Positions 5,280 to 32,325 of a stretch of 43,756 nt of DNA are shown one piece after another (within the stretch, counting starts at the first letter, position 1; every line of letters begins with the position of its first letter). Where the stretch lies: the NCBI GenBank assembly GCA_013115145.1, contig JAAPAO010000280.1:1-43756 (forward strand), read 5' to 3'. The notes beneath the pieces were generated by a model. The model was not told the origin of the DNA. It was given only the letters and a program-made list of their open reading frames with translations, and did no database searches. The position numbers and the translations under genes are program-made. This stretch comes from Perkinsus chesapeaki ATCC PRA-425. Taxonomy: Eukaryota; Protista; Perkinsozoa.

Positions 5280-7660
5280 CGTCCTTATCCTTTTCGTTTT
5301 GCAGAGCAGCTCGAAAGTCGCGTCCAGCGGTTGATAGGAGAAGTCGAAGAATTAAAATCGGAGTTACTGCTGAGTAGAAAGCTGGATAGGAAAGTAGGCG
5401 CGGAGCGTATTCAAAATCTTCAGTGCGGCGGTGGTAGGACTTGCTGCCTTCGAGCGCTAACGTTACAAGTTCGTTGATGCCTATTAAGCTGGATGGTGGC
5501 CAGGACTCCCTGCTCGAGGTGGGTTGTTGAAGGTTGTAGCCGGAGGACAACACAAAGAAGGGTGTGTGGAAGAATAATCCAACCAATGAGATATTGGCAT
5601 GCGTCACTCTACTTCAATCAATGCTCTATACGAACTGGTACCATCGCGTAATCAATAATCACTGTGAGTATCTTACCGTTTTTTTCCTAGCGTGCTCGCG
5701 AGCGATCGACATGAAATATTCTTCACACTGTTGTCACATGTCAATTTCTCATACTACACAGTTTCATGCAGGACATTCATCTCACTTCGTAGGTCGTCAC
5801 TGCAGTGAGAGCAAGAGCTATGGCACGTTTGATGTGGGCCAAAGAGTACCGCCCTGCATGACCGAGATGGTGCTAATGTTCAAAGTATCTTTCTTGCCCT
5901 GATGGTGTTGTGTTACCGCTGTACGGAGGGGTGGAATGATTGCCAGTTAATTGCGTGGATTTTGAAATGCAGTCGGCGCTGCAAGGTGGAATGCAGGTAG
6001 GCTGACTGTGTCCCTTATGGGCGCTCTCGGGTATCGTGGAATCTAGAAAGGAATTGAGCTCACTAGGGATTACAGTGAAACATATGACATGTGTTCTGTG
6101 GGGTCTGTTCAACAGAAAATAAAGTGTAAAAAATGTTTCTATGTATCAGCTTTAACCTTTTCTTCAGCGAGTGTTTTTAACCAACAGTAATTAGTCTGTT
6201 CATTACTCTTTTGTCTCTCCCCGAGGCACTTCAAAGTTTAGTTTCTCAGGCCTCAAATGTATTATAATGAAGCTCCCAATTTATGTTCATAAATCGGTTG
6301 AAAAAATGGTATTGATTACTCTTTCGATGAGAGCATTTGAGTGATGAATTCCGTCCGATCGGTCTCCGGGGTATCCGAATGTGTAATTAGTATAATAACC
6401 GACACTATGGTAGCTTGCTCAGGCACTTCAAGACGGTGCATCGAAAATGGTCGATTCTATCAAAACAAGCCTGAGTCCAGGCCCGGAATTCGCGGCGCTC
6501 AGGGATGATGAAGAGCATCATACAGGTAAGGATGGGTAGCTCGGCCTGTCTAGAAACGAGGCGATTGTTGCGAATTCTCGTGGCGGACTCTCGTCGCCGA
6601 ATACTCCTCGTCACGGTCTTAGACAGCCTCTTCGGTGAAATAGAATATTGTTTTTGTCGTGATATTACGGCATTTCAATTTGAATTTGGTACGGTTGTTG
6701 TGGCAGATAATTCTATCTATTTGAGAAGGCCCCACGGCAATATAGCTTTCAGCAGAGCCTTTACAGTGTCGGAATCGCCGACCGTCAAGTACGCCCCTAG
6801 AAGGCATCAGGTAGGCCTCCTCGCTGCCAACGCGGCATTGGAGGAAATAATGTATTTCTATTCTATTCCGAATGACCAGGATAGTTGTCGGTGTTGGAAT
6901 GCATCTGCTCGACCACACACATCTCTTGTAGTGTGACGAATTCTCCACCCGTTTTCCCCCTCCTTTGGGCCAAAGGAGCTTGCGGACTGTCTCGCTTCAG
7001 CATTGAGGTTCTCGATCTCAGCTGAGGAAAACTAGCGCTAAGTTCGTCGGTGACACTTTAGGCACAACAGTGTCCAAGCGTTTGGCGTACCGCAGCGTTG
7101 TTGCTTAATCACTTACTACTCCTACGAATTCAGAGTAGCGCTCGCTCGAAACGGGGAGCATCTCCGGATTCACATCGAGGGTCATGAGTATCTCATTAGT
7201 TGCTAATCACTCACTAGAGCATACTTTCCGGGGAAACGAGAGCGTCGGACAAGTGTGGAATAAGTCTACTATTTCATGATGGTCGAGTATACCGCGTCCT
7301 CGATCCAGGATGCGCATGTTCATACGGAAAAACCGCGCGCCTCGAAATCGATCCCTGTTGAACTTAACAGTGCTAAAGTAACCCTAGTAGGGTTCCCTGG
7401 TGAAACTATGGACGGTTACATCTCCGTATATGAGTGCTGCAGAATTGTTGCTTTTTGTTAGTCGGGAGATCTTGCTGCAAGGTTGCAGAAAACCGCTGAT
7501 GTGGCCTCAGCCCGGCTCAGTTCACCGGTAGGCAACTGCAAGTAGGCTTCTTTTCCGTTGTTCGCGCGAAGCTCGTAAGTGGTGAGAGATAACACCTTGC
7601 GTAGGCCATTGGTCTCTTTTTTGGATGGGATGGATGCGTGGCTTATAAGCACCACATTGA
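5280..7660 (-). mobile_element. Degenerate Ty3/gypsy-like LTR retrotransposon remnant (gag-like, possible protease, integrase); RT/RNase H not found
   Basis: Minus strand about 5900-5580 reads through stops as PSGQERYFEH*HHLGHAG...YEVR*MSC (HHCC zinc finger) then V*RIFHVD...GKILTVIIDY (gypsy integrase core). About 5400-5300 gives SAVTP..L..GRDFR. A stop-interrupted colinear frame at about 7260-6620 is gag/protease-like. No LTRs identified. Confidence 0.65.
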
Positions 7661-7672
7661 CTCAAATTAATT

Positions 7673-7770
7673 TCTCTCTTTCATATGTCGCTGGTGGCGA
7701 ACCGGCTTGATTCTCTTTTTCGATATGTCGCTGGTGGCGAGCCGGCTTGATTCTCTTTCTTCGATAAGTC
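7673..7770. repeat. 40-41 bp direct repeat x2.2 (ATATGTCGCTGGTGGCGARCCGGCTTGATTCTCTT...)
   Basis: Unit starts at 7683 and 7723, partial at 7764. Confidence 0.85.
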
Positions 7771-7860
7771 TTGCGGTGCCTCGGTTAAGTGGTAGTTCTT
7801 TCGCAACTAGTTCTGTTGTGGCTTGATATGCTTTGATTATCGGTTACTTGTTGCACGCAG

Positions 7861-8319
7861 GTTATTGAAACGGCGGCACGCCGAAAGTCTACAGGATCGA
7901 GTTTGGGAAAACCGAGAAGTCGCAGGGGAACCCCGAGCAGTTCGCCGGCGCTGGATAACCTTCTAGCTCAACCGATACATGCAGATCCACACGGCTCGCC
8001 AACTGTCGATGAGAGCTTTGCTGTGTTGCCGCTGGCGGGGATTGAACCTGCGCGGGATCCAGTGCCGGAGGTTGAGTTTACTCCGCATGGGGAATTGGGC
8101 GAGCTGGCGGACTTGTCGGCACTTTATGATGAAGTTGGGAACCCGATCGCCGAGTTTGATGGGGAAGAGCGTCACTTTGACGACTCACAGAAAGTGGAGG
8201 GGCCGGGGATCGTACCCGAGTCGCTAGTGGGAGAGCTGACGAGGATGCCTACTGGCGAACTGGTGGCACTGATTCGTCGAGTGATAGAACTGCGGCCGGA
8301 CGTCGCAGTGGCATTGTGA
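7861..8319 (+). CDS. Acidic/Pro-rich open frame of unknown function, possibly a terminal exon
   Basis: Open frame following ttgcacgcag at 7860 (VIETAARRKSTGSSLGKPRS...ELRPDVAVAL*). No upstream exon traced. Confidence 0.35.
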   Translation, partial: VIETAARRKSTGSSLGKPRSRRGTPSSSPALDNLLAQPIHADPHGSPTVDESFAVLPLAGIEPARDPVPEVEFTPHGELGELADLSALYDEVGNPIAEFDGEERHFDDSQKVEGPGIVPESLVGELTRMPTGELVALIRRVIELRPDVAVAL

Positions 8320-9755
8320 GACACTCCGTCGCTCGCCGCAGGACCGGCGTTTGACCACGTAGTAGGTTTGTAGGGTTCACTCCACCAGTAGCGCTTACCG
8401 CCCCACGCCGACGTCGGTAAGCATCTTATCATTGTTGTGCACGCATGTGCAGTTTTGTAAGTAGCCATGTTAGTTATCATGGTTTGAAGGGGTTTCCCTT
8501 AGCGTCATCTGAATAGCGGTTTTCATAAAGTATCTTTCTTTCCTTCAGTCAGTCTTGAGTTTGCTACTGTTGAGGGACTGTCAGTATTAAAGTGCTTGCT
8601 GGTTTCCCCACTTACGCGAATCAAGTGAGGTGACCAGAGAGCATTTGGCCACTGTTTAAGCTCACCTTACTGAATTACTGCATCCTCAGGAAATATCGGG
8701 CTCTCTTTTATTGCTAGTATACGTAGAGTACAACTTGTCGTCTTGTTGCTCTACCTCATACAGATGTCGATAAATGTTGGAGGGCAGGTGAATAGATAGC
8801 GGTCACTGCTGTGTAGTCTGTAGCTTACTATTAGCAAGGGTCACCTATTGAAGATCTAAATTACTTCTTTTTGTTTACGGAGAATCCTTCGCGTGTCTTT
8901 CCCCAGTGTTACCAAGTCGTCCTTACAGTGTATGATCTATTATACTGTTAAATTACTCTTTGAATGAATTGCGCATGCGCGCGGTCAGTCGACACAGCCG
9001 ACTCAATATCAGTTCGCCGCCACCCGAACAGTCCTCATCTCGAGGGTGTCAATGAGTGGCGTAAAAAGCATTATGTATTTCTACAGGTGAGGTTTCTGCC
9101 TGCTGGCATCCTTGAGCACTCTAGCCGTATTTTTACCAAGAGAGATATCATATTTTGTTTTGTGAAGTTGTAATGTACTTCTATTATGATAGTTTGAGCA
9201 TATAATACCTATATTATACAGGTTTTCATAGTTGAATATCACTTTATAGAGCCCAACAAGCCATTTCGATTGGTATTAGTTACATCATCAAGCTCGATGG
9301 GTAGACCCTTATTTTTCCATACAACCCTCTACTACTAGCATGTTGAAGTAATGTGTGAGTTATGTTTTGTAAGTACTATTGATTATATTTGTTATTATCA
9401 GCCTATCCGATTACTCCGGGGAGAGCATGTTAATAACCTTTTTGTTATTATTGATATCATTTCCGACTTTGTGCTTCCACCCCAGGAAGTAGACTGTCCT
9501 GATGAACCTGCCAAGGTTAGAGGATCAAAAATTAAATGTATAGAAAAATACGACGAAGACCCCGCAACTGCTGATAATGCATTGCGTAGTCTACTTGTTC
9601 GGCATCCACCGAGACATCACGTGATTATACATAATATATATTATGCAATTACACGACGACACATCTCCAAATTGTTGCTAAATTAATTCCAATTTACTCT
9701 TTTCGAAACCTTTTTTTCCAATGTACGTTTTTGATATATTTTTCCATTTTTTCAG

Positions 9756-11777
9756 CACGGCATTTGGGGGCACAACAGCGACCTTTTGGCTGTTCGTGAA
9801 GCACTGCTGTCACAGTGCAAAACTCGGTTATCGGAATCGAGCGGGTTGTATGTGGATCCGACTACTAAGGAAGAGATTCAAGTCATTACCGTTATCTCCA
9901 ACGTCAATACAGGGAAGACACATGATGGTGCTAAGGAGGGAGGGGAGAACCTCTTCCGGTAAGCGGGAGCCGCTTCGATTGTGAAGCTGACGTTGGTGGA
10001 CTAATTTTCAGAGTAGTTTTTCTGGCGACTTCTTCGACCTCGTAACAGACCGCTTGAGTTGATTTTGCTATCTAGTCGTGAGAGCTTCACGCAAATCTTG
10101 TTCGCTCGCCGCCGAGGGTTCCAATAAAGCTCCATTATGGAGCTGTCTCATATTCCCACTATGTTGTTAACAACAACAAGATAATTAAGGTTATCTACAC
10201 CCTAACTACAACAACATAATGGTTATCTACACCCTAACAACAACAACATAATGGTTATCTACACCCTAACAAAAACAACATAATGGTTATCTACACCCTA
10301 ACAACAACAACATAATGGTTATCTACACCCTAACAACAACAACATAATGGTTATCTACACCCTAACAACAACAACAACATAATGATTATCTACACCCTAA
10401 CAACAACAACAAAATAATGGTTATCTACACCCTAACAACAACAACAACATAATGGTTATCTACACCCTAACAACAACAACAACATAACGGTTATCTACAC
10501 CCTAACAACAACAACAACAACAACATAATGGTTATCTACACCCTAACAACAACTTATTGTTGTTAGGATGTGTGTGGAGGACAAACCTCTGTGATGCTAC
10601 CAAGGGGCTCTAGAGACTTGTCACGATAAATTCGGGTCTTGACCACCGTCATAAATTATCATAATGACTTTAGTTGCAGGCTCGACCTTACTTTGACATA
10701 ATCACGTAGTAGTAATTTAAGATTGAAAATCTCTCAGTAAGCTGGCCGTCCATGGCTGGTGGGCAAGCTGAAGTACTGGACTCAAGTTTGGGACACCAAA
10801 GGCGACTATAGATTGCATACTTGCGTATTTTACTTCGGAAGGCTTAAGCTCTTGAGTGGGCCGCGCCACATAGGATGGCGCGACGGTGAATGATAAATAA
10901 GGAATATTCTTTCAGGCTAGTGGAAGACACTTGTGAAGCCGGCAGCTACATTTCACTAATTGGTCACTCACTTGGTGGCCTTTATTGCAGAGCAGCATTG
11001 AGGCTGCTGGCGGCACAACCGTCACGATGTAGGCAGCGTTAGGGGGACCAGCGGAACGTCGTGTGCCGGGATCGAACTTGCGGCTTCTGTCAGATCCCTA
11101 CGCCGATCCAAGCGAGACTATTGGAAGCTTGGGCTTGGTACCAGTAAATTACATCTCATTTGCAACGCCGCATTTGGGCCTTCGAGAAATGCCTGCGTAC
11201 GTTTGTTCCCGCCCTTCCGAATGATGTGTTCATAATTCCATCTCAGAGTTGTACAGTTTGGCGCTCTTGTTGTAAGTGGAAAGACAGGATCAGATCTACT
11301 ATTGCGATCGGACACTCTAGGGGAGTGGCTCATTGATGAGGTAAGGTGTATAGTAGCTATCTGGGTACTTTACGAAACGGACTCTACCGAATTTGGAAAT
11401 TTAGAAATTTCACTTTCAATGGTATTAGATATTTCTGAGTAATACTCGGTACTACTGACTCAGTTATAAAAACCAAGGTAAACCGTAATACTCAGTAGTA
11501 CTGAGTATCACGGTTTACCTTGGTTTTTATAACCGTATAACGATTTTAGGCTCCCTATGGATTTAGGATCCCCCTTATCTTAGTAGTCTCTTTCATCTCT
11601 ATTATCTCTTCTATTCAGGACGCCCTTCGAGGGCTGGCCCTTTGCAAGCGAAGGATAGTGTACGCTAATGTGGCCAATGACTTGATGGTTGGGCCGTGGA
11701 CCTCGGCGATCTCTGATGGGTTTCCAGAGGAGGTAAGTGAAGATGGTCAACTATTGCAGACCGTTCGCAACTACTAA
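9756..11777 (+). CDS. DUF676 / putative serine esterase (alpha/beta-hydrolase lipase); first exon unresolved
   Basis: Spliced reading HGIWG...GKTHDGAKEGGENLFR|LVEDTCEAGSYISLIGHSLGGLYCRAAL...PVNYISFATPHLG...GKTGSDLLL...KRRIVYANVANDLMVGPWTSAI...TVRNY*. These are the family motifs in order. Introns include 9959-10915 and 11341-11618. Confidence 0.88.
10189..10553. repeat. Intronic minisatellite GGTTATCTACACCCT(AAC)nATAAT x11, unit 32-41 bp
   Basis: Unit starts at 10189, 10221, 10253, 10285, 10317, 10349, 10384, 10419, 10454, 10489 and 10530. Only the AAC count and single bases vary; there are no unique spacers. Confidence 0.95.
11463..11533. repeat. Near-perfect 71-bp palindrome (35-bp arms, 1 mismatch, 1-nt centre)
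   Basis: GTTATAAAAACCAAGGTAAACCGTAATACTCAGTA-G-TACTGAGTATCACGGTTTACCTTGGTTTTTATAAC. Confidence 0.95.
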
Positions 11778-12017
11778 GGCGAATTCGTGCTTCAAAAGGC
11801 ATATGGAGAAATATAATGAACTTGATAACGCGCTTATTATTGCTGTGTCTCTGTAACGATATTAATAATAATGTATGATATAAACACTGGCACGACTATC
11901 ATAACCCAGATGGTCTAAAACTTCCCTCACGAAGATTCAACATCGAACTTCTTACATTGTAAAAGTGATCGAAAAAAATCGGTTGGTCATATAACTTTGG
12001 GAGGAGGTTTGTGGCGA

Positions 12018-12235
12018 ATGATACAAATAATATTGCTTACATTAGCTTCAGTTGCGGCATTCCCGTATCTCTTCCGTATTGGACTTTTCAGGTATCAATG
12101 CGTTGCCGTGCCCATCCACGACAGCCCGTTGAGGTTAGTCAAGAGGTGAGCCTGTCTAAGCGGCTGGCCGGTGGCATTCCACAACTGTTGCAGGTTCTGG
12201 ATACATTCAGAGCGTACAGGGCTTCTGGGATACGT
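12018..12235 (+). CDS. Possible 5' exons of a secreted hypothetical protein (3' end unresolved)
   Basis: MIQIILLTLASVAAFPYLFRIG... is signal-peptide-like, followed by a GT-AG intron and FWIHSERTGLLGY. Confidence 0.3.
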
Positions 12236-13302
12236 ATGAGGGGCGAAGTTTCCAAACCGGCTATGAAGAGAGGTAAGCTTCAGTTTCGCTAAGCTTGGGA
12301 CTTACTGCGGTCACTGTGTCGGTGCGAAATGAGCAATACTAAGGATTCGTTATTTTTTGCAAGGTGAATGATAAGGCATGGTGAATTGCAGTGTTTTCTG
12401 TGCGAATCTCACCCTTTGGCACGTTAGTTGATATTACTATTTTATATGAATAATTTTCCCAGATAATTCCAATGCGCTGTTGTAATCGGACTCGAGTATT
12501 TCTCATGTACTCAAATGAATTTCGCCAGAAAAGTTGCTGATCAGTTTCTGTTCTTGCTCAGGTGCGTCATCTAACAGTAGCAGTCGTAGTGCCAGGAAAA
12601 ATAGCTCTGTGAGAAGCTTCAGCGTGAGGGAGATGAATTCGTCTACGTTATCGGCGCCAGCGAGACTGTTCGATTCCGAAGCCGGTGATGGGTCATTCGA
12701 TGATTCTAGTGATTCTGGAGAGATGAAAGGAGAAGAAGTGACTCTTCCAAAAATGAAGAAAAACAAAAAGTAAATCCCCTCGCCGAGGTTCGAACCTGCG
12801 CCCAGTGGTTGTTGGGAACTTTCAGGTGTTTGAAGAATCTCAATTGTGAACAGCTTGCCAAGCTTCGACGGATGATCAAAGCTTTGGAGACCCTCGAATG
12901 GACGCCTTATCCTTGCGACTGGAGGTATTCACTATCATTCGACTACAAGCTGAGCGGCTCTTCAGAATCGATTGGTAAACTTCAGTGGAGCGAGGTTTTT
13001 TCGTTTTAGTATCGTGCAAGGTACCAACAATAGTGAAGAGAGTGCGTCCAAGTGGGAGCGGTATCTTGTATATTATAGGAAACCAAGGGTAAGCTGAATA
13101 AAGATGCAATTTTCTAACTGTAATTTTTGTAAAGGCTTCTCATTTGAAGTGGATCCTTGTGAAATTCGGGTACAGTTTGAAATGCTCTTATTACGACATT
13201 ACTGTAGCCTCTAAATTAAAAGGGGAGGAGGTCTCATTAATCATCACGATCATTTCAGTGACTTGATATTGAACCTGAGCGATAGGACTTAACGTCGCGA
13301 CA

Positions 13303-20614: not shown

Positions 20615-20694
20615 GACAGTTTGGCCGAGTGGTCTAAGGCGCTAGCTTCAGGCGCTAGTCCGAAAGGGCGCGAGTTCGAATCTCGCAGCTGTTA
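20615..20694 (+). tRNA. trnL-CAG: tRNA-Leu(CAG)
   Basis: Full cloverleaf: CTAGC-TTCAGGC-GCTAG anticodon arm, long variable arm TCC-GAAA-GGG, GCGAG-TTCGAAT-CTCGC T arm. Confidence 0.95.
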
Positions 20695-21123
20695 CTTACG
20701 TACCTCAACCCATTCCTTTCGTAGTGTCGTGCTCAACTAGTACTTATGTCGAAAGATCCGCTCCCGGGATTACCTTTTCCCCTTTTCTCAGATCCTCTCT
20801 AAGCGAGAGGTTGTCCAAGAGTACTATACGAAGCACGTAGCCAGTTCAAAGAAGACCTAGTGTTTCCATCTACCCGTGTTGTGAATCGTCGGGCAACGTG
20901 ACACTTCTGAAAAATGGATTCATGAATCGCTTCGCTCCGCCGAGATCAGTAGCGCGCGCCCTAATAAAAGATAACATCTGCTGTGAGAAAGCCAGTCTTC
21001 GGTAACTTGAGGCAAATCTCCTCTGTAACATTAAGCAGAGCTTTCCGAGTTAATTTATTAAACTGGGGGGATGAGAGGGACACTCGGTGTAGGTGGTAGC
21101 GTTGCCTCTTTTTGTGCTTTACA

Positions 21124-25766: not shown

Positions 25767-26933
25767 ATGTCGTCTTCTAACGAGTTAATCTTGAAGCTGC
25801 ACACTACCGAGGAGACTCTTCGTGTTCGTGTCGATGCTGAGAAGTGCAAGGACATGGCACAGATCAAGGGTTACATCGAGCAAGCCTGGCCTGCTCTCAA
25901 GGGCAAGGAGTATCGTATCTACTACTTGGATGATTTCGACGAAATGTGCCTATTAAACGATCTCTCTGTTGGTGATGCTATGTCTTTGCCTGGGAAGATG
26001 TTCAAGTCCGATGACGAGACTGCCGTACCTGTTCTCGATTTGTTCATCAAGACCGATGCAGACAAGACCGGTGCTGTTAGGAGCGCTCAGGAAGATACTT
26101 CCGCAAGGAATCTTGCTAGGTGGTTGACCGACTTCGATTACATGAACACCTTTGATGATGCTTGGCAGCTGGTTGATAGCATGCTTGCTACTGGTCAGGA
26201 TCTTGACAGTGTCGCCAGACATCTCCAGAACAGGCAGAACCAGAAGCAGGCTGTTGCTGCGGCTCCCGTTGCAGCCGCTCCCGCTGCTGTGGAGGCTCCT
26301 AGAGGAGAGAAGCGGACTGCTAGCGAAATGGAGAAGGATGACAGCAGCAGCAAAGCCATTCAGCCTCACACTAAGTCCACTGGTACCATCTCGGCTACTA
26401 CTCGCAATGGAGATCATGAGTATCATATCGAGAGGCATGTGAAGTCCGAGAAGGAGGCCGTTGATACTATGGTAGATTTGCTAACAGAGATGGGCTTTGT
26501 TGACAGCAAGGACAAGGCTAAGGAGCTCGTGAATGGTTTGGTTGGTTCTGGTAAAGATCTCCAACGTGTTGCCGATCATATCGTGTCTAGGGCAATCGAG
26601 CAAGAGCAAGACTCTTCTCGTGCTCAAAGGGACATCGCCAACGAGATGAGGATGGTTGACCAAGATTCTACTGCTCGTGACTTCGCCGACCTTCTTGATG
26701 ACTTTGGTTTTGTGGAGAGCCGTGATGCTGCCCGTGAACTAGTGGGCTCTTTGATGGCCACTCAGCAGAACCTCAGTCGTATCGCCGATCACTTCATGCG
26801 TCATGCTCGAACCACATCTCTCAAGGGTTCTAAGAAGGTAGCTGACGCTCAGAAGAAGGCTGTTGGTGATGTCGCCGAGAAGAAGGCTCCTGCTGACAGT
26901 AAGGCTGCCACTGAGCAAGAAAAGACTGCGTAA
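25767..26933 (+). CDS. PB1 + 3x UBA-like repeat protein (p62/SQSTM1-like architecture), paralogue 1, intronless
   Basis: 388-aa ORF. N-terminal LILKLH...RVRV and acidic YYLDDFDEMCLLND..GDA (PB1 basic Lys plus OPCA-like motif). Three ~43-aa helical repeats, the second containing LTEMGF. Confidence 0.88.
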   Translation: MSSSNELILKLHTTEETLRVRVDAEKCKDMAQIKGYIEQAWPALKGKEYRIYYLDDFDEMCLLNDLSVGDAMSLPGKMFKSDDETAVPVLDLFIKTDADKTGAVRSAQEDTSARNLARWLTDFDYMNTFDDAWQLVDSMLATGQDLDSVARHLQNRQNQKQAVAAAPVAAAPAAVEAPRGEKRTASEMEKDDSSSKAIQPHTKSTGTISATTRNGDHEYHIERHVKSEKEAVDTMVDLLTEMGFVDSKDKAKELVNGLVGSGKDLQRVADHIVSRAIEQEQDSSRAQRDIANEMRMVDQDSTARDFADLLDDFGFVESRDAARELVGSLMATQQNLSRIADHFMRHARTTSLKGSKKVADAQKKAVGDVAEKKAPADSKAATEQEKTA

Positions 26934-27480
26934 ACCTACTATAAATGATGAAGCAGTAATTACCGAAAATACCCTATTAGGTTCTAATTACTCCATATAC
27001 CTTTCTATGGTTCTTTCATTCCTTTATCAAATATGCTATAACATAGCATTTTCTAAATAATCACTCTACGCTTGTGTTTTTGGTAGAGGTCGAAAGTTAA
27101 CTTTGCAATTGCCTTACGAGCGCAGTGGTGACCATTTAGCAAAAACATGATGTTGGCGCTCATCACGAGATTTGTGTGATTTACCTATCGACGGCATCGA
27201 AGTCTCTAAGCTGCGTTTGAGAACTGTTGATTGATTATTAGCATCGAGCTGAATGTGGCAATGTTCCGGCTCCATTTGTAGACCGGTTGTTGTTGCGGCT
27301 TGTCCCAGGCCATTGATATTGAAGACTGGCCATCCTCCTAGAGGAAATCATAGTGGAAGAATGTTAGCCTTTTCCATGCAGCTTCAACATAAACCTATTT
27401 GGCAGCTCGCCTCTACTCTTGTCAATAAGGAACTTCGTAACACGCTCTCCGTAGACGACTGCTTGATGGGCTATCTGCAT

Positions 27481-27660
27481 ATGACTGTCATGAGATTGTA
27501 CACTTACTTCTACACATGACTGTTATGGAATAATTCACTTCTACAAATGACTGTCATGAGGTAATTCACTCACCCCTACACATGACTGTTATGGAATAAT
27601 TCACTTATTTCTACTATACATGACTGTCATGAGATAATTCACTTACTTATCCTACACATG
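27481..27660. repeat. Alternating A/B minisatellite (31-38 bp) with palindromic core ATGAC-T-GTCAT
   Basis: Unit starts at 27481 (A), 27516 (B), 27547 (A), 27582 (B), 27620 (A), partial at 27658. Confidence 0.9.
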
Positions 27661-27793
27661 AATCTGAGGCCCCATCTTCCTCTGAAGCGACTTCCAAGTG
27701 ACAACAAAACAAGGAACAATGAAATATAAGAGTATTTGAAAATGATGAAGTAGACAACTAAAAATAGCATTACTCATGGCAAAATTATTGCGC

Positions 27794-28837
27794 TTAATGA
27801 GTCAGACTCTTCTTGCTAGCATCGGTTCTACCAGCCTCCAAACGCTTAGTAAGGCCGTCAAGATCAGCCTGAGTGGCCATTAGAGCACTGACGAGTTCTC
27901 TTGCAGCGGCCTTGTTCTGAATGAATCCGAAATCACTGAGCATGTCGACGAAGTTCCTTGCTAGAGGATCAGCTTGAACATTCTGAAGCTCCTTCGTCTC
28001 ATCTTGGACTTCCTTGGTATCCTTGGCATCAGCCTTCTCGTAACCCATCAGGCGATCAGCAACCTTCTGCATACTTGACATGTCGTCAAACATGTTGTTG
28101 ACGAGTTGCTGGCCACTCTTCTTGTCACCGACAAATCCAGACTTGTTCAAGAAGTCGGCCATCGCATCTTTAGCCTCCTTCTCGGAAGATACTTCCTTCT
28201 CCATATGCATCACCTTGGGCTCAGAGCCTGATTGCTGGACAGCCTTCTCACAGCTAACGCTGACCGCAGGCTTCTTCTGCGAAGTAGCAACCTGCTTTTG
28301 AGCAGCTTCGTCCTGCTCCTCAACGGAGGGCTCTTCCTTCTTGTCGACGACAGCCTTCTGCTCCTTCTTTTCGGCCTTCTTAGCCTTCAATGAATCGGCA
28401 ACCTTGGCCATATCCTGATCAGCAGCCGCTAAGCTGTCAACCAAACGCAATGCTGCGAAAGGATCAGTGACATAGTCCAAGTCGTCGAGCAAATCAGCAA
28501 CCATGAGAGCAGTGGGGTCCAATGGAGTAAAGCTAGGCTGTTCACCTCCCTTAACGTCCACGTAGATATCCAATACAGGGACAGTATAAGAGATCTTGCC
28601 CCTAGCATTAGCAACTGCCAAAGCATCAGGGAGAGAGAGGTCGTTCAGTAGACACATCTCACCGACGTTGTCCAAGTAGAAGAGGCGATAGTCGCGGAAC
28701 TGAAGTTCACGCCAGGCCTTCTCCACAAAACCACAGAGCTGCTCGTAGGTCTGGCACTGTTCGGGATCGACTCTAACACGGATTGTCTCCGAATCAGAGT
28801 GCAACTTAAGGCATAGAACACTTGCGATAGATGACAT
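27794..28837 (-). CDS. PB1 + 3x UBA-like repeat protein, paralogue 2, intronless
   Basis: 347-aa ORF; LCLKLH...RVRV, FYLDNVGEMCLLNDLSLPDA and the same three repeats. Confidence 0.88.
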   Translation of the reverse strand: MSSIASVLCLKLHSDSETIRVRVDPEQCQTYEQLCGFVEKAWRELQFRDYRLFYLDNVGEMCLLNDLSLPDALAVANARGKISYTVPVLDIYVDVKGGEQPSFTPLDPTALMVADLLDDLDYVTDPFAALRLVDSLAAADQDMAKVADSLKAKKAEKKEQKAVVDKKEEPSVEEQDEAAQKQVATSQKKPAVSVSCEKAVQQSGSEPKVMHMEKEVSSEKEAKDAMADFLNKSGFVGDKKSGQQLVNNMFDDMSSMQKVADRLMGYEKADAKDTKEVQDETKELQNVQADPLARNFVDMLSDFGFIQNKAAARELVSALMATQADLDGLTKRLEAGRTDASKKSLTH

Positions 28838-29370
28838 ATTTAAATGATTAAAGAATTGAATAGATAACTACGAAGCGATATATGTGACCAAAACAAGTTA
28901 TTCAGAGCACCACATGAATCGTGTTTTCGAGAGCATGACTCTTTGCTGAAGCTTTGTTCGGCTAGTAGCGATATGATGCCAACTACACAACAATGGTGTA
29001 ACACAATGCTGTCTCCTCTTTATTCTCCGCGGCTAGAGTATACAGCAATTACTGAAGAGATTTCTTCCAAATATAAAGGCTTGCTGACTAGTGGTGTAGC
29101 AGGTGCCATTCATTTCCTGGGTGTTCATAGAGGCAAGGACACCGGTATGTTTCCCCGATCGGGCATCGTCTCCATCACGAGTATCTTGCGCAGAATCGTG
29201 TTCATGTCCCCAGCTTCGGTGGCGCAGCTAAGATACGATCTGCTCATCATGAAAACGTGAGCGTCATTAGCTATTCAGTGAGATATAGGAGAGGGATATT
29301 CGTTGGTGATATAAAGTACTTGTTTCTTCCTGTAGTTTCAATTGAATTTCTTTCATAAATACTATCAATA

Positions 29371-30474
29371 ATGTCAAGTGATCTTATTCTAAAGCTTCGT
29401 ACTAGAACACAAACGATGAGGGTCAGAGTTGCCTCTGAGAAGTTGACTGATATGTGTCAAATTAAGGACTATATCGAGAAGGTCTGGACTCAGTTGCAGG
29501 GCAAGCAGTATCGTGTGTACTATGTCGATGAGTTCGGCGAGATGTGCCTCTTGAACGACTTGTCTCTTGGTGATGCTATCGCAACTGTCAGAGAACAGGC
29601 TGCTGCTCTCAACATTACCCCTGTGTTGGACTTATACATTCAAGACGAGGGTGAGGAAGTTCCACTATCATCTGCCGTTCCTGAGGAAAACATCGCTCAA
29701 CAGGCTGACGTCGCTGATACCCTCGCACAGTTGTTGGACGATATGGACTTCATGGACAGTCTGGACGCCGCCGAGCAGTTTGTTGATGGTCTGGTAGCAG
29801 CTGACTCTGATTTGGATGCGATACTAAGCCACTTGCAAGGTGATGACGGTGCTGCACAACGGAAGGTTGTTCCCGCAGCTCCTGCCAAGTCTATTGCGGC
29901 TCCTGAGAAGAAGTCCACGAAGGCCGTGCAGAAGGCTGCCAAGCCCTCTAAACAGCCGTCTACCACTGGTGAGATTGAAGCCAGCGGATATGAGCAAGTT
30001 GGTGATAAGGCACCCAAGCAGTTCCACATTGAGAGACAGGTGTCTTCTCCGAAGGAGGCTTCTGATATGATGGTCGACCTTCTCTCGAAGATGGGCTTTG
30101 TTGACAGCAAGAAGGACGCCCAGGACCTCGTAGCAAATCTGACAAGCTCTCCTGATGACTTGCAACGAGTTGCGGACCACATTGAAGATTTAGTAGAAGG
30201 ACGGGAGCCTGCTGTTATGGATGATACTGCCAGACAGTTCATCGACATGTTGAATGATACCGGTATGGTTCAAGACAAGGACGCTGCCGAGGATCTTGTT
30301 GGTGCATTGGTAGACGCTGAGCAAGATGTTGACAAGGTCTTTAACAACTTCCTCGAAAGGACCAATTCCAAACAGCAGCAGAAGGCAATTCAGCAGCCTC
30401 ACAAGTCTACGAGGAGGTCCCATCGGAGTCGCCGTTCTTCCAAGAAGCAACAGGCTGCTCAGTCCTCCGCATAA
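29371..30474 (+). CDS. PB1 + 3x UBA-like repeat protein, paralogue 3, intronless
   Basis: 367-aa ORF; LILKLR...RVRV, YYVDEFGEMCLLNDLSLGDA; repeat 2 contains LSKMGF; basic C-terminal tail. Confidence 0.88.
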   Translation: MSSDLILKLRTRTQTMRVRVASEKLTDMCQIKDYIEKVWTQLQGKQYRVYYVDEFGEMCLLNDLSLGDAIATVREQAAALNITPVLDLYIQDEGEEVPLSSAVPEENIAQQADVADTLAQLLDDMDFMDSLDAAEQFVDGLVAADSDLDAILSHLQGDDGAAQRKVVPAAPAKSIAAPEKKSTKAVQKAAKPSKQPSTTGEIEASGYEQVGDKAPKQFHIERQVSSPKEASDMMVDLLSKMGFVDSKKDAQDLVANLTSSPDDLQRVADHIEDLVEGREPAVMDDTARQFIDMLNDTGMVQDKDAAEDLVGALVDAEQDVDKVFNNFLERTNSKQQQKAIQQPHKSTRRSHRSRRSSKKQQAAQSSA

Positions 30475-31075
30475 GTGCGTAGCTTTATTGATTTTCATAC
30501 TAATCTTATAAAATACCCATTTGGTGATATAACTATGATACTGAGAATATAATTCTCTTCTAATAATTACTTGGCTTTGTGTTCTGTAGTAGCTGGGTAT
30601 TGGTATTCAGAGGGTTTCAACTCGGCACTCCCTACATCCGTACAGGAAGGGAAGTGCGGTGAGAATTGCAAACGTGCCTTCGACCTTACGTCGATTATTG
30701 TGACAGCTCGTTGATTGATGTATGTATCAGATATATACCTCGCCAGTGAGTAGCTCTAGCAGCCTAAGTAAGCACACAGTGTGTGTACCGTACACAGTGT
30801 AGGATGCTCGCTCCTAGAGCAATGCTCTATAAGTGACATAGCTAAGCGTGTGTGAAAGCGGGTGCGCCTGTTCGAAGCCTTTGTAAGGAGATCTGCGTTA
30901 TCTGCCTTCATCGAGGAGCTAATGGTGTGTCGGGACTTCAGAATTGAAATGTAGAACATGTCATTCCACAGAACGACGGAGGCGTAGCACTAGCGGTTAC
31001 AAGCCGATAGATTGTATATCCAATATCCATAATGTAAGCTTCGTGCTTGAGAGCTGCTCTGTGGGTACATCTAAC

Positions 31076-31155
31076 GACAGTTTGGCCGAGTGGTCTAAGG
31101 CGCTAGCTTCAGGCGCTAAACCGAAAGGGCGCGAGTTCGAATCTCGCAGCTGTTA
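31076..31155 (+). tRNA. trnL-CAG: tRNA-Leu(CAG), variant copy with C.A mismatch at the top of the anticodon stem
   Basis: Identical to 20615-20694 except GT>AA at 31119-31120. Confidence 0.8.
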
Positions 31156-31542
31156 TAGTATGGTGTTTTAATGAGTTCGCTCGAAACCATGAAGTCACTT
31201 CATTGAAGTGTTAGTCATGTATATAACAGTCGGCGCCACGACTGGCAAAAACGGTTTGAGCGAGAAACTTTAGTAGAGCAAATTGTTAGCTGGAAGCACA
31301 CCAGTTCACTTTCGCAAGTATGTCCCATGCGGCGCAGTAACCCCCAATAGCACCATCATCAGCGGTGCTAGAGAGTCCTGGGCCACGTTTTAGCCACTTT
31401 TGGTATGCTCAACGCATTTTACCGTGGCCAGTGAGCTAAAAGCTGCTCTATGTTAATTCAGAACCTAGTTCTTGCCTCAGTGAGGTCAACTTCCGCGCCC
31501 TGATTTGTGAGTCCACGGGAGAGCGGTATTCTTTTAATACAA

Positions 31543-31615
31543 GCCCAGATAGCTCAGTTGGGAGAGCGCCAGACTGAAGATCTGGAGGTCCTCAGTTCGA
31601 TCCTGGGTCTGGGCA
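31543..31615 (+). tRNA. trnF-GAA: tRNA-Phe(GAA)
   Basis: 73-nt cloverleaf, CCAGA-CTGAAGA-TCTGG anticodon arm, TTTT terminator just downstream. Confidence 0.96.
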
Positions 31616-31894
31616 CTTATTTTAGTCCTTACTTTTCCTATCTAGACTCCATGGGCATCGAAATCTATTCAGGGATCAGAGAATACCACACGGACGCATG
31701 CACATGTTGCCGATTGCGCGCGCCGCTCAAAATGGTGGAATAGGCATACAATGTCCGCCGAAACGATCCTTCCATAAGGGAACACGTGAGAGCTCTTTGT
31801 GTTGATGGGACAGGGCATCCACTGCTTTCTCGGCATCAGACCTTGGTTAGCCAAAGTAGTCAAGGAACTGGATGATCCAGTCGGGATCTTTAGA

Positions 31895-31966
31895 GTCGTT
31901 ATCGTCTAGTGGTTAGGACGTCACGTTGTGGCCGTGACAACCCCGGTTCAAATCCGGGTAGCGACT
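31895..31966 (+). tRNA. trnH-GUG: tRNA-His(GUG) with T at the discriminator position
   Basis: GTCGTTA/TAGCGAC acceptor stem, TCACG-TTGTGGC-CGTGA anticodon arm, T6 run at about 31980. Confidence 0.95.
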
Positions 31967-32188
31967 ATTTCTATCTACATTTTTTAGATCGAGTATCTGA
32001 GTTTTATAACACTCTAGTCAGATGAGGCTGAACCTTTAGAACAGTGTCTAGAACCTCTACAAGGCCGCAATACAGCAGTTGCTCGCACGATAACCGAGAA
32101 GGTTGGTCACCCGGGGCCATAGTGCGTGCATCCATCACCCGAGACTTACTTGCGATGTCGTGCAAAGCTACGAGGTTAATACACACAA

Positions 32189-32253
32189 GCCCAGAACGGG
32201 AGAGCGCCAGGCTGAAGGCCTGGAGGTCCTCAGTTCGATCCTGGGTCTGGGCA
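32189..32253 (+). pseudogene. tRNA-Phe(GAA) derivative lacking the 5' half of the D arm
   Basis: Aligns to 31543-31615 with TAGCTCAGTT replaced by AC; anticodon arm CCAGG-CTGAAGG-CCTGG. Confidence 0.85.
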
Positions 32254-32325
32254 TATCATATCTTAGTGAGTTTCTACGGGCAACCTGTTTGCGTTCCTGA
32301 TTGACCACTCTGCGCTATTGTGACA

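Follow-up and report, generated by a model that had tools for sequence, protein, structure and literature searches.

A triplet of PB1 genes with a repeated acidic helical module in Perkinsus chesapeaki and its possible relation to p62-like scaffolds

Introduction

Receptors of the p62 type, which polymerise through a PB1 domain and gather ubiquitinated cargo into condensates, are generally regarded as having evolved from NBR1 within animals, and the presence in the protist Perkinsus chesapeaki of three neighboring genes coupling a PB1-type N-terminus to three small helical repeats raises the question of what these proteins are and whether they may take part in a scaffold of a comparable kind. 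The genes, designated here paralogues 1, 2 and 3, lie within a stretch of 43,756 nucleotides (nt) from strain ATCC PRA-425 (assembly GCA_013115145.1, contig JAAPAO010000280.1, positions 1-43,756 of the forward strand), which is hereafter referred to as the window. An earlier note had proposed that they constitute a lineage-specific p62-like system in which each protein joins a PB1 domain to three UBA-like repeats. As described below, PB1 is a known domain, the repeated module is an unannotated domain restricted to the genus, and the combination of one PB1 domain with three modules is a new variation on the theme of PB1 adaptors.

Results

Organization of the three genes

Open reading frames (ORFs) of at least 150 amino acids (aa) are scarce in the window, with only 8 found along its 43.8 kilobases (kb), and 3 of these are paralogues 1 to 3. 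In agreement with the earlier note, the genes follow one another in a +,-,+ arrangement and share an N-terminal domain and three helical repeats (R1, R2 and R3), their products displaying 35-43% pairwise identity in a full-length alignment. Paralogues 1 and 2 are convergent and paralogues 2 and 3 divergent, with start codons 533 base pairs apart. The genes and their domains are listed below with the evidence for each; the confidence of AlphaFold2 models is given as the predicted local distance difference test (pLDDT), and selection as the ratio of non-synonymous to synonymous divergence (dN/dS).

25767..26933, + strand: paralogue 1 gene, 388 aa, intronless, PB1 and three helical modules (ORF; orthologues in P. 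olseni, 80%, and P. marinus, 71%)
25767..26051, + strand: paralogue 1 PB1, aa 1-95 (alignment to the modelled PB1 of paralogue 3; K, R, R and acidic motif kept)
26085..26237, + strand: paralogue 1 module R1, aa 107-157, D-Y loop (repeat alignment, profile-profile comparison)
26433..26594, + strand: paralogue 1 module R2, aa 223-276, preceded by the H-I-E-R motif, MGF loop (repeat alignment, profile-profile comparison)
26655..26816, + strand: paralogue 1 module R3, aa 297-350, FGF loop (repeat alignment, profile-profile comparison)
27794..28837, - strand: paralogue 2 gene, 347 aa, intronless (ORF; P. chesapeaki copy 91% identical in aa and 94% in nt; dN/dS 0.17)
28547..28837, - strand: paralogue 2 PB1, aa 1-97 (alignment)
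28376..28519, - strand: paralogue 2 module R1, aa 107-154, with a conserved P-S-F-T-P-L just upstream at aa ~100-106 (repeat alignment, scan for the pattern of the LC3-interacting region, LIR)
28037..28198, - strand: paralogue 2 module R2, aa 214-267, preceded by the H-M-E-K motif, SGF loop (repeat alignment)
27818..27979, - strand: paralogue 2 module R3, aa 287-340, FGF loop (repeat alignment)
29371..30474, + strand: paralogue 3 gene, 367 aa, intronless (ORF; P. chesapeaki copy 90% identical in aa and 88% in nt; dN/dS 0.10)
29371..29652, + strand: paralogue 3 PB1, aa 1-94 (AlphaFold2 pLDDT 79-89; PB1 matches in the PDB)
29695..29847, + strand: paralogue 3 module R1, aa 109-159, D-F loop, net charge -14 (AlphaFold2 helices 108-124, 131-143 and 148-156)
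30034..30195, + strand: paralogue 3 module R2, aa 222-275, preceded by the H-I-E-R motif, MGF loop (single-module AlphaFold2 model with pLDDT 85 and three helices; full-length model with helices 227-240, 247-257 and 264-275)
30217..30375, + strand: paralogue 3 module R3, aa 283-335, TGM loop (AlphaFold2 helices 285-296, 303-315 and 320-338)

The database protein for paralogue 1 (P0010) has 389 aa, with an extra terminal Phe, and the continuous ORF stops after 388 aa (26931-26933); the deposited model probably uses a different 3' end.

The N-terminal PB1 domain

The AlphaFold2 model of paralogue 3, built on a family alignment of 19 sequences, displays for residues 1-92 (pLDDT 79-89) the order beta-beta-alpha-beta-beta-alpha-beta, with strands at positions 4-10, 15-21, 47-52, 58-60 and 85-92 and helices at 28-38 and 63-80. 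Nearly all of the top matches to this domain in a Foldseek search of the PDB were PB1 domains (E 4e-5 to 1e-2, template-modelling (TM) score by target up to 0.85), including those of NBR1 (1wj6, E 4e-5; 2bkf, E 7e-5, TM by target 0.83, root-mean-square deviation (rmsd) 2.3 A) and Par6 (1wmh_B, TM 0.85), and further those of aPKC, MEK5, MEKK3, p40/p67phox, Cdc24 and p62, together with PB1 filament entries of p62 and AtNBR1. At the sequence level, the PB1 profile found no significant hidden Markov model (HMM) match in the PDB. When the family profile was searched against 1.84 billion representative proteins, only 30 were retrieved at E <= 1e-3; Perkinsus relatives picked up at E 2e-29 to 4e-5 score above the cut-off of Pfam PB1 (PF00564, 23.6 bits), namely P0031 (27.9 bits), P0037 (27.5), P0040 (25.4) and P0035 (24.7), and the same profile also finds a canonical NBR1 of PB1-ZZ-FW-UBA architecture from a metagenome (P0044, E 4e-4). 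Since the relatives found by the profile exceed this cut-off, the membership of the window proteins in Pfam PB1 can be taken to hold transitively. Based on the beta-grasp topology of the model, the fold matches, these relatives and the canonical NBR1 retrieved by the profile, the N-terminal domain is almost certainly a PB1 domain, as had been claimed.

PB1 domains with both a basic and an acidic face are of the type able to chain head-to-tail, as they do in p62. In the 15 aligned full-length N-terminal domains of the family, K8, R17, R19, D53, E57 and D68 are invariant and D63 nearly so, and in more distant relatives the six invariant positions are conserved with few substitutions. K8 is the Lys of beta1, R17 and R19 are the two Arg of beta2, and the acidic residues belong to a conserved motif, Y-x-D53-[DE]-x-[GD]-[ED]57, plus D63 and D68; in the HMM alignment to the NBR1-like P0044, K8 falls on the beta1 Lys and D53, E57 and D63 on the acidic residues of the OPCA motif. 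The coexistence of a basic Lys with an acidic OPCA-like loop, which the earlier note had pointed out, is therefore conserved, and it supports, as far as sequence can tell, the assignment of these domains to the polymerising type AB, defined by a basic Lys/Arg cluster and an OPCA-like motif. Oligomerisation mediated by PB1 is predicted, and we regard it as the somewhat more probable outcome.

The repeated helical module

A profile-profile comparison of R1, R2 and R3 with hhalign (probability 96.7-98.1%, E 4e-10 to 1e-13) identifies the three repeats of ~50 aa as one homologous module. Each repeat of paralogue 3 is modelled as three helices in the full-length protein (pLDDT 60-70), with linkers predicted to be disordered (pLDDT <50), and a single-module model computed on 41 repeats reaches a pLDDT of 85, with helices at positions 6-20, 26-38 and 40-55. 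The module is acidic, with a mean net charge of -6.1 (range -17 to -1), the whole proteins reaching -16 to -21. Its loop motif reads MGF in R2 of paralogues 1 and 3 and SGF in R2 of paralogue 2, is kept in most R3 copies, and is replaced by D-[YF] in R1; the MGF of paralogues 1 and 3 and the D-[YF] of R1, as well as the motif H-[IM]-E-[RK]-x-V-x-S-x-KEA located ahead of R2 in all three paralogues, had been read correctly from the sequence and were recovered in our alignments. The region that leads up to and includes the H-[IM]-E-[RK]-x-V motif (29968-30042, aa 200-224 of paralogue 3, and the equivalents in paralogues 1 and 2) appears in AlphaFold2 as a beta-hairpin of low pLDDT (~48-58), which may be an N-terminal extension specific to R2.

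The repeat part of the family profile has matches only in Perkinsus among the 1.84 billion proteins, and the members of the family are mostly labelled hypothetical in the databases. Two of the automatic UniRef names are more explicit, FOL47_003682 being called 'UBA domain-containing' and FOZ61_009866 'PB1 domain-containing'. A feature search of the ESM Atlas returned, with scores of up to 0.55, PB1 clusters, an oomycete cluster with PB1 and CUE, sequestosome-1 and UBA_5, which were treated as leads only and not used as evidence.

A Perkinsus relative with the p62 order of parts

Two proteins of P. marinus, PMAR011080 (P0031, 500 aa) and PMAR011078 (P0047, 503 aa), carry, in this order, a PB1 domain, two ZZ fingers, a long disordered stretch, a LIR-like motif and a single C-terminal module. 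Their PB1 belongs to the same subfamily as that of the three window genes (86 bits, 33-38% identity), the ZZ fingers are recognized by Pfam at E 2e-24, and the C-terminal segment is a copy of the helical module of the family (37 bits), preceded by a conserved D-[AT]-G-S-W-T-[ER]-V that fits the core LIR pattern. Judged from sequence, the succession of PB1, two ZZ, LIR-like motif and module is the order of parts of p62. Because this order is combined with an origin of p62 placed in early Metazoa (PMC9582228), we hypothesize, by analogy, that the module takes the position of a ubiquitin-binding domain within a protein that would have become p62-like by convergence.

Other fusions of the same PB1 subfamily were also observed. 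In P. olseni, P0035, P0037 and P0051 join it to an OB-fold domain (Pfam tRNA_anti-codon), and one of the PB1-OB models of this species bears the name '60S acidic ribosomal protein P1', which probably stems from the merging of gene models. In P. chesapeaki, the model P0030 ('kelch-like') runs from BTB-BACK into the last PB1 strand and three helical modules, and reflects either the merging of gene models or a genuine fusion, which would link the module to an adaptor of the Cullin-3 type.

Conservation of the genes and their sister array

The closest public proteins are from P. chesapeaki itself (90-91% identity), followed by those of P. olseni and P. marinus, and each of the three genes has its own intact orthologues in the latter two species. 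A maximum-likelihood tree resolves at least 7 paralogue lineages in Perkinsus, with the clades of genes 1, 2 and 3 supported at 96-100% each; the triplet is thus part of a larger family and not a whole system. When genes 2 and 3 are compared with their copies on contig JAAPAO010000216.1 of P. chesapeaki, dN/dS amounts to 0.17 and 0.10, respectively, and none of the PB1, repeat and linker portions reaches 0.2. Because they are conserved in three Perkinsus species and display dN/dS values of 0.10-0.17, the three ORFs are genuine protein-coding members of a multigene family, kept under purifying selection and well beyond chance ORFs. In the same comparison, the PB1-coding 5' parts (28547-28837 and 29371-29652) display a synonymous divergence (dS) of 0.05 and 0.17, against 0.25 and 0.93 in the repeat-coding parts, possibly due to gene conversion between the arrays or to constraint on the 5' coding DNA.

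Contig JAAPAO010000216.1 harbors six genes of the family within 11.8 kb. When the window (27794-32261) is compared with positions 6392-12973 of this contig, only a block comprising paralogue 2, paralogue 3 and the downstream tRNA genes aligns, at 88-94% nt identity (94% for gene 2 and 88% for gene 3), and neither the flanks nor the intergenic DNA do so. The array lacks paralogue 1, in the place of which a member of 41% identity is found on the other strand, and it further contains two copies of paralogue 2 and two additional members. Since the alignment is confined to this block and the position of gene 1 is occupied differently, the window corresponds to a partial duplicate of the array on JAAPAO010000216.1, diverged to a dS of 0.2-0.5 and with an extra paralogue, and not to a new kind of locus. 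Allelic haplotypes were considered as the source of the likeness and rejected on the same pattern of alignment, the shared block having the appearance of a segmental duplication and not of a pair of alleles. The two tandem copies of paralogue 2 on the sister contig (6392-7441 and 8391-9440, 349 aa each, dS 0.05, dN/dS 0.17) either arose by tandem duplication in recent times or were duplicated in the assembly.

Concerning the remaining features of the region, paralogue 3 is followed by a cluster of tRNA genes, Leu-CAG, Phe-GAA and His-GTG, at 31076-31967. Similarity to the tRNA-Phe region of JAAPAO010000216.1 is seen at ~32197-32261, and a second tRNA-Leu(CAG) is located at 20615-20695.

Discussion

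As the most likely mechanism, we hypothesize that the PB1 domains would pair front-to-back with each other, with those of other family members and with that of the PB1-ZZ-ZZ-LIR-like-module protein of the genus, giving rise to mixed oligomers or filaments that would expose the helical module in many copies. The role of the module would then be that of the cargo-binding unit, and if a single ligand had to be named, ubiquitin or a ubiquitin-like mark would be the first choice, because the position of the module in the p62-like relative is exactly the one occupied by the ubiquitin-binding UBA domain in p62 and NBR1; ubiquitin itself is a tentative prediction by this analogy, and one we would not favor over all other ligands combined. 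Neither ZZ nor FW was found by Pfam in the three window proteins or is visible in their alignment, which moreover contains no Cys-rich finger, so that the absence of a ZZ finger reported before is borne out. Candidate LIRs detected by a pattern scan are particular to each clade, that of paralogue 2 keeping P-S-F-T-P-L just after PB1 and that of paralogue 3 partly S-G-Y-x-x-V. Since the triplet proteins share no ZZ, no FW and no LIR common to the three, they would be subunits that raise the valency of a co-polymer, within a scaffold for selective autophagy or condensates, rather than complete receptors. Polymerisation, hetero-assembly, ubiquitin binding and a link to autophagy are all inferred here, and the full mechanism, PB1 co-polymers displaying the module as a binder of ubiquitin-like or ubiquitinated cargo within a p62-like scaffold, has in our judgement an even chance of being correct.

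Several observations weigh against this proposal. A direct Pfam scan of the three window proteins yields no PB1 match and no significant family, and the OPCA motif is less acidic than the canonical one, being weakest in paralogue 2 (D-N-V-G-E). No LIR candidate is common to the three paralogues, and in paralogue 1 the scan, which is one of patterns only, found none. The searches for transcripts covered two tiny RNA runs, in which the share matching the stretch was 0.00, with one partial match of 33 bases and no transcripts of it. Regarding the UBA-like nature attributed to the repeats, the Pfam UBA and CUE models each match 2 of the 41 repeats (best E 0.071 and 0.049, respectively), PUB and several unrelated families matching as often, and the UBA match spans only 12 residues, corresponding to helix 1 and MGF. 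The hhalign comparison of the repeat profile with the canonical UBA of P0044 gave a probability of 1.6%, with only L-L-D-M-G-F aligned, and a local hmmsearch agrees with this outcome. Likewise, an HMM search of PDB sequences with the repeat profile found nothing significant and no UBA, and the single-module model retrieved no UBA or CUE from Foldseek searches of the PDB and of the Swiss-Prot AlphaFold database, from VIA (48,161 chains), from the VIA re-ranking or from a shape search of the ESM Atlas, which yielded matches to RecR N-termini and to generic helical structures, all below threshold; small helical domains are easily missed by such tools. The helices of the module are longer than those of a UBA of ~40 aa, R3 of paralogue 3 no longer has the aromatic residue of this G-F loop, and R1 has Asp in the place of its Gly. 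The prediction that the repeats would model as three-helix UBA bundles was thus borne out as to the three helices and not as to their length or the structures retrieved, and the identity of the module as a UBA is unproven.

The lack of any significant match to UBA or CUE makes a different reading of the module worth considering, in which the proteins would be PB1 scaffolds of the Par6, Bem1 or MEK5 kind carrying a genus-specific acidic interaction module unrelated to ubiquitin, serving for instance in binding to basic partners or in self-association. The strong acidity of the modules, the lack of a LIR common to the three genes and the fusion of the same PB1 subfamily to an OB fold (P0035, P0037) and, in a gene model, to BTB-BACK (P0030) would all fit such scaffolds, and the presence of the module at the C-terminus of the PB1-ZZ protein would have to be ascribed to coincidental domain shuffling. 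However, in that protein the module follows a LIR-like motif at the C-terminus, in the exact layout of p62, the pattern of helix 1 followed by a [MS]-G-[FY] loop resembles UBA, and automatic profile annotation names one member UBA; we therefore hold a module unrelated to ubiquitin to be a realistic but tentative explanation. The fold searches raise a further candidate, given that the N-terminal three-helix domain of RecR, of the helix-hairpin-helix type, was the consistent top structural match in four of them (TM by query 0.57-0.66, Z 5.6-6.0, ~52 residues, rmsd ~3 A) and that sister PB1 proteins carry OB folds, so that the family might consist of DNA or RNA binders oligomerised through PB1. 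These matches are, however, below significance, with E >1 and VIA Z <8, a level described as common for helical models, the G-h-G hairpin is lacking with a single Gly present, and every module is net negative, as are the whole proteins, which is unsuited to a nucleic-acid-binding surface. On account of this acidity the nucleic-acid reading was rejected as very improbable. Finally, the genes might be duplicates in decay, or artefacts of annotation within repetitive DNA, as could be argued from the lack of an RNA run found to hold the stretch, with two tiny runs searched, and from its being a partial segmental duplicate of another array; but full-length intact ORFs where long ones are otherwise rare, intact orthologues of each gene in three species, and low dN/dS with invariant domain residues leave this the least credible of the explanations, and a pseudogene origin was rejected on the basis of dN/dS and orthologue conservation. 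The p62-like scaffold with the module as its cargo-binding unit is the explanation we favor.

A protist genus in which a p62-like gene coexists with an enlarged set of PB1 proteins, each bearing three copies of its tail module, would be a natural experiment on valency and hetero-polymerisation in scaffolds, in an economically important parasite of oysters and clams that can be transfected, and it would define a new family of small helical domains. If the module does not bind ubiquitin, the proteins would still form an unannotated, genus-specific family of PB1 scaffolds, of narrower interest. The most far-reaching view, in which Perkinsus independently built a p62-style adaptor system for condensates or autophagy outside animals, composed of a p62-like PB1-ZZ-ZZ-LIR protein and around a dozen co-polymerising PB1 subunits, with a new acidic three-helix domain other than UBA as the cargo or ubiquitin unit and a mix of paralogues that would set valency and cargo choice, appears to us unlikely.

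The architecture seems not to have been described before, as had been suspected: it is confined to Perkinsus, its members are mostly labelled hypothetical, literature searches for Perkinsus PB1, PB1 with CUE and PB1 with tandem UBA found nothing on it, and a survey of PB1 architectures, which lists kinase, NBR1 and CBS families for Chromista, does not include PB1 with a triple module (PMC7051960). The suggestion of a lineage-specific p62-like system stands as regards its restriction to the genus and gains from the P. marinus PB1-ZZ-ZZ-LIR-like-module protein, its p62-like character being plausible by analogy.

Compared with known systems, the module resembles UBA and CUE in its three helices, in the hydrophobic helix 1 leading to a [MS]-G-[FY] loop and in its C-terminal position in the p62-like protein, but it differs in being of ~50 rather than ~40 aa, in its longer helices and strong acidity, in a loop that is degenerate in R1 and some R3, and in having no significant HMM, profile or fold match to either domain. 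At the level of the locus, the six-gene array on JAAPAO010000216.1 belongs to the same family and shares paralogues 2 and 3 and the downstream tRNA genes at 88-94% DNA identity, and differs in its flanks and in lacking paralogue 1. The PB1-ZZ-ZZ proteins of the genus have two ZZ fingers, a W-type LIR-like motif and one module, whereas the window genes have neither ZZ nor such a motif and carry three modules. NBR1, of pan-eukaryotic distribution and PB1-ZZ-FW-UBA architecture, provides the best structural match for the window PB1 (2bkf), but the window proteins are devoid of FW, ZZ and a canonical UBA; since they carry neither FW nor ZZ, they do not qualify as NBR1 homologues, for which FW together with PB1 or ZZ has been published as the minimal requirement (PMC9582228), and are not members of the p62 or NBR1 groups. 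With p62/SQSTM1 they share an N-terminal PB1 with a basic Lys/Arg cluster and an OPCA-like motif, a disordered linker and small helical modules towards the C-terminus, and they differ from it in the absence of ZZ and of a common LIR and in having three modules, not detectably UBA, in the place of one UBA. Given that p62 arose in early Metazoa (PMC9582228), any likeness found in Perkinsus is one of parallel evolution and not of orthology.

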